From Salpingoeca rosetta (taxonomy: Eukaryota; Protista; Choanoflagellata): a stretch of DNA of 62,992 nucleotides. A model generated the notes under the pieces. That model was not told the origin of the DNA and ran no database searches. It was given only the letters and a program-made list of their open reading frames with translations. The stretch spans positions 1,285,580 to 1,348,571 of the forward strand of contig JAWQFM010000018.1 of NCBI GenBank assembly GCA_033442325.1. The letters run 5' to 3'. The position numbers and the translations under genes are program-made. Of the stretch, positions 61,427 through 61,718 are shown piece by piece (the stretch's first letter is position 1; each line of letters starts with the position of its first letter).

Positions 61427-61539
61427 GACGGACTGCTAATCCGTTGTACTCTGCACGCGCAGGTTCGAATCCTTGATACGAACAAGCACAACCCCAGCAC
61501 ACTGCAGCTGGGGATCTGTCGAATGTCCTGCCGTTGTCG
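61427..61539 (+). tRNA. tRNA-Ser(GCT) 3' portion (positions 26-73) with a 56-nt T-loop insert (61470-61525); 5' portion absent; copy 1
   Basis: ACGGA CT GCT AA TCCGT anticodon arm, long variable arm (one mismatch), GCAGG TTCGAA[insert]T CCTGC CGTTGTC G, then T8 at 61546-61553. Confidence 0.7.
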
Positions 61540-61608
61540 CACTTGTTTTTTTTCTCTCCATCCAGGCTACTCCCCACACACTCCTTCACTGCCTCGTGTC
61601 TCAGCTGT

Positions 61609-61718
61609 GACGGACTGCTAATCCGTTGTGCTCTGCACGCGCAGGTTCGAATCTGCCAATTCAAGCACAACCCCAGCACACTGCAGCTGGGGATCTGTCG
61701 AATGTCCTGCCGTTGTCG
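61609..61718 (+). tRNA. tRNA-Ser(GCT) 3' portion with a 53-nt T-loop insert (61652-61704); 5' portion absent; copy 2
   Basis: As copy 1, with an intact variable arm GTGC TCT GCAC; T7 at 61726-61732. Confidence 0.7.

Follow-up and report, generated by a model that had tools for sequence, protein, structure and literature searches.

Introns in the nuclear tRNA genes of eukaryotes are described in reviews as lying between positions 37 and 38 except in a few algae and in nucleomorphs, and the enzyme that removes them, the tRNA splicing endonuclease (TSEN), as tied to a ruler that reads the mature body of the tRNA (PMC4090602; PMC13578239, 2026). Position 59/60 in the T-loop is one of the non-canonical intron positions of archaeal tRNA genes (PMC4090602), ectopic introns of the bulge-helix-bulge (BHB) type have been described only from the nuclei of Cyanidioschyzon, Chondrus and some green algae and from nucleomorphs (PMC4090602; PMC13578239; PMC3728597), and removal of the D- and T-loop introns that lie in strict or relaxed BHB motifs of algal nuclear tRNA genes has been shown by reverse transcription PCR (PMC3728597; PMC13578239). 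We examine here two tandem units resembling tRNA-Ser(GCT) genes near the end of a 62,992-nt stretch of the genome of the choanoflagellate Salpingoeca rosetta (GenBank assembly GCA_033442325.1, contig JAWQFM010000018.1, positions 1,285,580 to 1,348,571; this whole stretch is called the window below), together with the gene family to which they belong. A preliminary description of the window had proposed that a holozoan tRNA-Ser(GCU) carries a BHB-like intron at 59/60 that standard scans would miss; this is strongly supported for the gene family, two complete paralogues of which become canonical tRNA genes after excision, and is not supported for the two window copies themselves. We consider it quite likely that the nuclear tRNA-Ser(GCU) genes of S. 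rosetta contain a real family of TSEN-type T-loop introns at 59/60, with the window copies as defective relics.

Five Ser(GCT) copies at three loci were found in the genome (55.4 Mb in 68 contigs, written below as C followed by a number) as matches to a 161-nt unit in a whole-genome search. Two are the window copies, and the others are as follows:

C34:503053-503204, minus strand: complete Ser(GCT) gene with a type 1 insert.
C9:1700930-1701083, minus strand: complete Ser(GCT) gene (C9A, the upstream copy) with a type 2 insert.
C9, just downstream of the complete C9 gene: third 5'-defective unit (C9_B).

The complete C34 and C9 genes have a full 5' half, GACAACGTGGCCGAGTGGTTAAGGTG, whose GACAACG is complementary to the CGTTGTC of the 3' end; they open GACAACG-TG-GCC-GAGTGGTTAA-GGT-G and then continue into the same body as the other copies. 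Their A box (TGGCCGAGTGG) is intact, they have about 45 nt of upstream sequence in common, and T runs stand at their ends, as they do downstream of all five Ser copies. When the insert is excised in silico at 59/60, ARAGORN calls an 82-nt tRNA-Ser(gct) for both C34 and C9A. Previous annotation of an older S. rosetta assembly with tRNAscan-SE gave only two Ser(GCT) calls, of 74 and 77 nt, normal Ser tRNAs being 82 nt long (PMC6188563, Table S4b), and the 3-nt gap between these two calls is the length difference of the two insert types. AGC and UUC are marked as optimal codons in S. rosetta in the same study (PMC6188563).

No uninterrupted Ser(GCT) gene was recovered. A search of the whole assembly with GGAYTGCTAAKCC matches only the five copies. 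With two patterns that run from a GCT anticodon loop to the T-loop, matches beyond these five were no more frequent than the chance matches of the reversed-pattern control, and BLAST with the 5' exon added only three tRNA-Ser(AGA) genes to the five. The preliminary description had allowed that ordinary intact genes might account for all mature tRNA, and this genome-wide search does not bear that out. A mobile element or short interspersed element was considered and rejected, as the 161-nt unit has just five genomic matches at three loci and no other Rfam family is present in the insert. A permuted or split tRNA need not be invoked, because complete colinear genes exist.

The preliminary description had also pointed to other tRNAs as places where similar inserts might be sought, and such inserts are present in tRNA-Phe(GAA), with an analogous one in the U6 small nuclear RNA (snRNA):

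C7:861987-862052, minus strand: tRNA-Phe(GAA) with a 41-nt insert.
C7:877880-877945, plus strand: tRNA-Phe(GAA) with a 41-nt insert; the C7 pair is about 15.9 kb apart.
C9:847874-847939, plus strand: tRNA-Phe(GAA) with a 41-nt insert.
C9:842525, minus strand: degenerate tRNA-Phe(GAA) copy with a 41-nt insert, adjoining an N run.
C9:815095-815277, plus strand: the sole U6 snRNA gene; about 66 nt interrupt the loop of its internal stem-loop.

In each of the four tRNA-Phe(GAA) genes the 41-nt insert lies at T-loop position 59/60, and the genes read …CCCAG-TTCGAT-(41 nt)-C-CTGGG-TGACGGC-A, then a T run; among the three good copies a single base of the hairpin loop varies, and all three surfaced as low-scoring Rfam tRNA matches of 31.4 bits. 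Excision at 59/60 leads ARAGORN to call tRNA-Phe(gaa) with the T-loop TTCGATC, and pattern and BLAST searches of the assembly found no uninterrupted Phe(GAA) gene. In the published annotation all four S. rosetta Phe(GAA) genes were flagged as putative pseudogenes by tRNAscan-SE, and Monosiga has four normal 73-nt Phe genes (PMC6188563). The conserved U6 core ACAGAGAAGATTAGCATGGCCCCTGC occurs once in the genome with up to three mismatches allowed, and the gene matches the Rfam U6 model just to model position 68. Its insert of about 66 nt, between GCGCA and AGGATGACACGC, folds locally into a near-strict BHB that consists of an outer helix, a 4-bp UGCG:CGCA helix, a 3-nt CAA bulge with an inner helix beyond it, and a 3' bulge UGA, and cutting after the second bulge nucleotide restores CCCCUGCGCAAGGAUGACACGC (canonical U6 is CCCCUGCGCAAGGAUGA). 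A spliceosomal intron in U6 was rejected, since no GT...AG register restores U6. The U6 gene has a TATA-like box at about -30, a T run downstream, and a B-box-like GGTTCGATGCC inside the insert. The genes for 7SL, RNase P RNA and 5S have no interruption.

tRNA-Phe(GAA) is the sole decoder of UUY codons and tRNA-Ser(GCU) the sole decoder of AGY codons, and U6 is indispensable. Because these three RNAs are essential and exist only in interrupted form in two assemblies, their inserts would have to be removed, and because three unrelated inserts share endonuclease geometry with nucleotide-exact restoration of the mature RNA, we read them as real introns.

The geometry is as follows. The Ser inserts end in CGAA two nucleotides before the 3' junction, and this CGAA forms the central helix UUCG(54-57):CGAA, which is perfect in all five copies; the 3' splice site lies in a 3-nt bulge, U-G|U, that adjoins the CCUGC strand of the T stem. 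Unconstrained minimum free energy (MFE) structures of window copy 2, C9_B and C9A contain the UUCG:CGAA helix and the UGU bulge next to the T stem GCAGG:CCUGC, the pairing being UUCGA:UCGAA in copy 2 and C9A; that of the C9A precursor is a cloverleaf with an extended T-arm helix and the 3-nt bulge. Ser and Phe do not show the strict hBHBh' motif, whose inner helix and second 3-nt bulge they lack; their 5' site is placed in a 17–20-nt loop that contains a small variable hairpin. The preliminary description had called the motif relaxed, which agrees both with this loop and with the recovery of the relaxed bulge-helix-loop form (hBH or BHL) by unconstrained folding of copy 2, C9_B and C9A, and that form is the usual one among eukaryotic nuclear introns (Soma et al., PMC3728597). 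In Phe the central helix is UUC:GAA plus a G.A pair. For any one gene family, a 4-nt Watson-Crick complement would arise in a fixed register with a chance of 1/256; it is perfect also in U6, and three of its four pairs are present in Phe. The T arm, with its 5-bp stem and 7-nt loop, is shaped like the anticodon arm, so that 59/60 is the T-arm counterpart of 37/38 and the pair between U54 and intron nucleotide -3 is the analogue of the anticodon-intron pair. Canonical introns are found in the same genome in Ile(TAT) and Arg(CCT), and by hand inspection that of Ile(TAT) shows the same hBH logic.

Compared with the systems described above, the S. rosetta introns have the position and the logic of the archaeal BHB introns of Crenarchaeota and Nanoarchaeota (outer helix, 3-nt bulge, 4-bp central helix, cut after the second bulge nucleotide and exact restoration of the loop), but their host is a eukaryotic nuclear genome with a heterotetramer-type TSEN, and their 5' site is in a large loop instead of a second 3-nt bulge with an inner helix. 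As in the algal cases, whole isoacceptor families depend on such introns; S. rosetta differs from the algae in being a choanoflagellate (Holozoa), a lineage for which reviews up to 2026 list no such intron, in having two affected tRNA families versus 63% of the genes in C. merolae, in that no permuted genes were seen, and in that its splicing is predicted from sequence. Like canonical 37/38 introns of hBH form, the T-loop introns are inserted between loop nucleotides 6 and 7, pair the first loop nucleotide with intron nucleotide -3 and have their 3' site in a 3-nt bulge; unlike them, they lie in the T-loop, where the mature-domain ruler cannot apply and where the precursor is without the T-loop/D-loop elbow before splicing. 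The U6 introns of Schizosaccharomyces and some basidiomycete yeasts, which are of the mRNA type, likewise interrupt U6 near the catalytic stem-loop, but the S. rosetta U6 insert has BHB geometry and no GT...AG borders at any register that restores U6. Full-text literature searches found no report of tRNA introns of this kind in Salpingoeca, Monosiga or choanoflagellates, nor of a U6 with a bulge-helix-bulge, the only trace being the pseudogene flag in PMC6188563. The mechanism class would be the known one in a new lineage (Holozoa), with a possible extension to snRNA.

These features suggest the following pathway. We infer transcription of the complete genes by RNA polymerase III (Pol III) because they have an intact A box, a B box kept at the DNA level and a T-run terminator; since the insert begins TCC or TCT, the B-box consensus GGTTCGAATCC is intact at the DNA level and Pol III promoter function should survive. 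Transcription would yield a 135–138-nt precursor in which U54-G57 pair with the CGAA near the insert's 3' end and so add 4 bp to the T stem GCAGG:CCUGC, which would place the 3' site in the 3-nt bulge U-G|U60 and the 5' site, A58-A59|U, in the loop of a relaxed hBH. Such an hBH in the T arm would be a geometric copy of that of the canonical 37/38 intron, with U54:A(-3) standing in for the anticodon-intron pair. TSEN would cut both sites in a mature-domain-independent mode, and RtcB would join the halves into an 82-nt type II tRNA-Ser(GCU). The predicted spliced junctions are GGTTCGAA|TCCTGCC for Ser, AGTTCGAT|CCTGGG for Phe and CTGCGCA|AGGATGA for U6. The genome has two loci with a TSEN catalytic domain (PF01974), both on C13, and one RtcB gene, on C16.

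Three RNA-seq runs from 2026 (101-nt pairs, about 1.5 Gb read per run) gave 5, 8 and 9 reads on the C9 locus (22 in total). Reads in which exon 1 is joined to the insert were found for both complete genes at a depth of 1–7; four reads of run X18 enter the type 1 insert and so represent the C34 gene, and some reads contain the 5' leader or cross the terminator and spacer. The reads point to insert-containing transcripts of low abundance (or to trace DNA), as would be expected of a short-lived precursor. Seven reads of run X19 extend through the T7 terminator that belongs to the complete C9 Ser gene and enter the spacer (L004:1683-1690, spacer 1645-1682), which suggests terminator read-through or an overlapping transcript. 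Contigs from the deep Hi-C DNA run X12 contain no intron-less joint. An odd X12 contig that could have been a variant intron proved to be a Hi-C ligation junction (GATCGATC).

In the two window copies the T-loop inserts are flanked exactly as the preliminary description had read them, GCAGG-TTCG-AA|T…CGAA-TG|T-CCTGC, and excision of 61470-61525 and 61652-61704 regains the T-loop TTCGAAT in both. The features of this locus (window coordinates) are:

61253..61399, no strand: (GC/GT)n-(GT)n microsatellite adjoining copy 1, in the place expected for a 5' tRNA half and promoter-proximal region; the paralogous C9 locus has the true 5' half here.
61404..61427, plus strand: degenerate 5' segment of copy 1, TCACTGCCTCGTGTCTAAGCTGTG, remotely resembling GCCGAGTGGTTAAGGTG; no acceptor 5' strand, D stem or A box, and no tRNA by ARAGORN before or after excision.
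61428..61469, plus strand: exon-1-like body of copy 1, with anticodon arm (GCT 61435-61437), long variable arm, T stem 5' strand and T-loop 54-59; one difference from the functional genes.
61459-61463, plus strand: T stem 5' strand GCAGG of copy 1, then TTCGAA at 61464-61469.
61470..61525, plus strand: copy 1 insert, type 1, 56 nt, identical to that of the complete C34 gene; CCCCAGC/GCTGGGG hairpin; its 3' CGAA pairs with TTCG 54-57 and is followed by the TG of the 3-nt bulge.
61526..61539, plus strand: exon-2-like part of copy 1, with T60 (61526), CCTGC 61527-61531, and CGTTGTC plus discriminator G 61532-61539; identical in all five copies.
61546..61553, plus strand: T8 run of copy 1, resembling a Pol III terminator, 6 nt past the tRNA-like 3' end.
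61554..61585, plus strand: spacer between the tandem units, also present in the C9 locus.
61586..61609, plus strand: degenerate 5' segment of copy 2, TCACTGCCTCGTGTCTCAGCTGTG; no tRNA by ARAGORN after excision.
61610..61651, plus strand: exon-1-like body of copy 2, with anticodon GCT 61617-61619 and GCAGG 61641-61645; identical to the functional genes.
61652..61704, plus strand: copy 2 insert, type 2, 53 nt, one nucleotide off the insert of the complete C9 gene; hBH fold in the unconstrained MFE structure.
61705..61718, plus strand: exon-2-like part of copy 2, with T60 (61705), CCTGC 61706-61710, and CGTTGTC plus G 61711-61718.
61726..61732, plus strand: T7 run of copy 2, terminator-like; the T8 and T7 runs stand 6–7 nt past the 3' ends of copies 1 and 2.
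61747..61801, no strand: (GT)n microsatellite downstream of copy 2.

The units are direct repeats with a period of 179–182 nt, copy 2 beginning 182 nt downstream of copy 1. From the anticodon stem to the discriminator base the copies differ at one nucleotide, as had been noted before, namely a G>A change at 61448 in copy 1, where the A disrupts one variable-arm pair; the earlier reading that the 5' parts of the inserts diverge while the hairpin and junction complement are conserved also holds on comparison, the divergence covering the first 10–13 nt and the CCCCAGC/GCTGGGG hairpin and the CGAATG end being identical. After insert removal both copies have an anticodon arm with GCT, a long variable arm, a T arm and a discriminator G, and the B-box sequence is preserved across the exon/insert border as GGTTCGAATCC in copy 1 and GGTTCGAATCT in copy 2. 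At each of the three loci the tRNA-Ser units are bordered by long (GT)n or (GC-GT)n microsatellites, and in the window one takes the place of the 5' half and promoter-proximal region of copy 1.

The claim that a tRNA-Ser(GCT) gene is present twice in the window did not survive this comparison. A search with the pattern G[AG]C[AG][AG]CG finds no 5' acceptor strand complementary to CGTTGTC upstream of either copy, and the D arm with the Pol III A box (TRGCNNAGTGG) is missing from both, GCCTCGTGTCTAAGCTGTG standing in place of TGGCCGAGTGGTTAAGGTG. The 5' segment of both is instead TCACTGCCTCGTGTCT(A/C)AGCTGTG, which in copy 1 directly adjoins the (GT)n tract and which is common to the three defective copies with 1–3 differences among them. 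ARAGORN finds no tRNA in the window copies whether the insert is kept or excised in silico, nor in C9_B after excision, and the Rfam tRNA model gives only sub-threshold matches of 21.8 and 14.9 bits (threshold 29 bits) to the window copies. An alternative tRNA fold of copy 1 at 61412-61482, with the acceptor TCGTGTC/GATACGA, was rejected as chance: it is the 21.8-bit match, its D arm is vestigial, and it is absent from copy 2 and C9_B. Having neither an acceptor 5' strand nor a D arm, the window copies are incomplete as tRNA genes. From 61425 to its end the window is 87% identical to the C9 locus over 1647 nt and is therefore a segmental duplicate of it, and the window copies are probably non-functional, 5'-defective tandem relics in this duplicate. 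They resemble tRNA pseudogenes with T-arm insertions and 5'-truncated tRNA relics in lacking the acceptor 5' strand, D arm and A box, in having one stem-breaking substitution and in their microsatellite flanks, but differ from them in that the insert is the same intron as in the family's only working genes, not a disabling lesion, and in that the body is nearly identical to those genes.

That near-identity bears on the status of the window copies in more than one way, since body and insert match the working genes to within 0–1 nt, whereas identity to the paralogous locus is only 87% in the flanks. It could mean selection and not death, and the units might then be alive, that is, maintained and expressed to yield an RNA without the tRNA 5' half. 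Such an RNA could, for example, act as a regulatory transcript, supply the intron RNA, or be a fragment like the 3' part of a tRNA. The units retain T-run terminators and a sequence like a B box, the degenerate 5' segment is kept in three copies with 1–3 differences, and a few RNA reads span the terminator, spacer and 5' segment of such a unit, all of which would agree with this. We nonetheless regard it as unlikely: concerted evolution by gene conversion would explain the identity without function, the A box and acceptor stem are missing, the G>A at 61448 breaks a variable-arm pair, and the sole alternative tRNA fold is the sub-threshold one rejected above. The reads, moreover, are not assignable to the window over C9. 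A G>A at L004:1627, considered as proof of window-copy expression, was rejected as a strain or assembly difference at C9_B, since the Hi-C contig equals C9_B at two of the three positions that separate C9_B from window copy 2 and differs only at 1627. We read gene conversion from the working genes as what has probably kept the relics near-identical to them from the anticodon stem onward, with selection as the alternative.

For the family as a whole, several observations weigh against removal of the inserts as introns. The 5' site (A59|U) is in a 17–20-nt loop and not in a 3-nt bulge; the central helix of Phe has only three Watson-Crick pairs plus G.A; covariation is absent, the paired parts being near-identical among the five Ser copies and no relative having been found in metagenomes (one pattern scan gave four ordinary uninterrupted Ser(GCT) genes with a chance downstream CGAATG, which is uninformative). 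The MFE structures of the C34 and Phe precursors are not the cloverleaf/hBH, and the constrained fold is 7–8 kcal/mol higher, folding energies being weak evidence either way. Eukaryotic TSEN normally sets the 5' cut by measuring from the mature domain, which a T-loop insert disrupts. No spliced joint or contig occurs among the 22 RNA-seq reads at the C9 locus, which are uninformative on mature tRNA because libraries of this type do not capture it. Finally, the Rfam tRNA census scored 63 of 498 candidates, so the absence of intact genes rests on the pattern and BLAST searches.

Two other explanations draw on these points. The interrupted Ser(GCT), Phe(GAA) and U6 genes could all be pseudogenes, with intact working genes in unassembled sequence; the pseudogene flags on all four Phe genes, the N runs of the assembly (for example beside the C9:842525 Phe copy) and the lack of a spliced read are in line with this, and eukaryotic tRNA genes with an insertion in the T arm are, according to a review, commonly treated as pseudogenes (PMC4090602). 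That last argument, however, holds when one of many synonymous genes is hit, and here the whole family is hit; intact Ser(GCT), Phe(GAA) and U6 genes are missing from two independent assemblies, the contigs of a deep DNA run contain no intron-less joint, the interrupted genes give perfect cloverleaves after excision and retain promoter boxes and terminators, and in each of three unrelated inserts the 4 nt that follow the helix have their complement at exactly the required position (a chance of 1/256 each), all of which makes this explanation very improbable. We also think it improbable, if slightly less so, that the inserts are real but are not removed by TSEN and RtcB at the BHB-like motif, being instead processed by another nuclease/ligase route or kept as expansions. 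The failure expected of the eukaryotic ruler on a T-loop insert, the Ser and Phe 5' sites outside a canonical 3-nt bulge and the presence of insert in RNA-seq reads speak for it, and retention is easier to envisage in the U6 stem-loop than in the T-loop of a tRNA. Yet at the 3' sites of Ser, Phe and U6 the helix, 3-nt bulge and A-I-like pair used by the endonuclease are present in exact geometry, BHB-rule cuts regain the canonical mature sequences to the nucleotide, a 53–56-nt T-loop insert would abolish the T-loop/D-loop interaction, and insert-containing reads are so rare (depth 1–7) that they fit a short-lived precursor better than an abundant mature RNA. BHB-type T-loop introns are, furthermore, removed in vivo in the red alga Cyanidioschyzon (PMC3728597).

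Published tRNA calls contain further candidates. In Monosiga brevicollis both Ser(GCT) calls are 74 nt versus 82 nt for other Ser tRNAs (scaffold_10:212569-213069; PMC6188563 Table S4a), a hint that the Ser intron is older than the divergence of these two choanoflagellates. Its Lys(CTT) genes include five pseudogene-flagged calls, four of 91–93 nt (scaffold_26:250951-252741) and one spanning 166 nt (scaffold_36:54631-54796) (PMC6188563 Table S4a), and the Monosiga Ser(GCT) and Lys(CTT) calls are candidates for hidden non-canonical introns. The published S. rosetta table has no tRNA-Thr(AGT), though ACC is a major codon (PMC6188563), and a genome-wide search with the pattern TAGTAA-N13-22-GTTCRA found none; a Thr(AGT) gene may be hidden by an intron, or two 96-nt 'Thr(TGT)' calls may be mislabelled.

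Other Pol III genes were noted in passing. The window has three ordinary tRNA-Val genes, at 32620-32694 (AAC), 32811-32885 (AAC) and 48236-48310 (CAC), the two AAC genes being 191 nt apart, and elsewhere a pair of tRNA-Ser(AGA) genes lies 6648 nt apart. Both distances, like that of the C7 Phe pair, agree with the published S. rosetta tRNA table (Southworth et al. 2018, PMC6188563, Table S4b), the Val spacing corresponding to contigs cont1.1603/1605 of the older assembly. Many contigs have a 5S rRNA gene close to an end, often to both ends, at distances from a few kb up to about 60 kb (C1:6594, C8:5747, C9:36632, C9:1932849 and C18:1367194, the last about 19 kb past the window end), which suggests a subtelomeric 5S gene on most chromosome arms.

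S. rosetta is a genetically tractable, close unicellular relative of animals, and mutations in human TSEN cause pontocerebellar hypoplasia. With moderate confidence we propose that S. rosetta has a general, mature-domain-independent BHB-like splicing of Pol III transcripts, on which the cell would depend for decoding UUY and AGY codons and for its only U6. If this is true, standard tRNA annotation mislabels such genes (the four Phe genes as pseudogenes, Ser(GCT) as 74–77 nt), and the U6 insert would be the first BHB-type intron proposed in a spliceosomal snRNA. Non-canonical tRNA splicing would then extend to Opisthokonta, and the S. rosetta genes would offer natural substrates, essential to the cell, on which the mature-domain-independent mode of TSEN could be studied.

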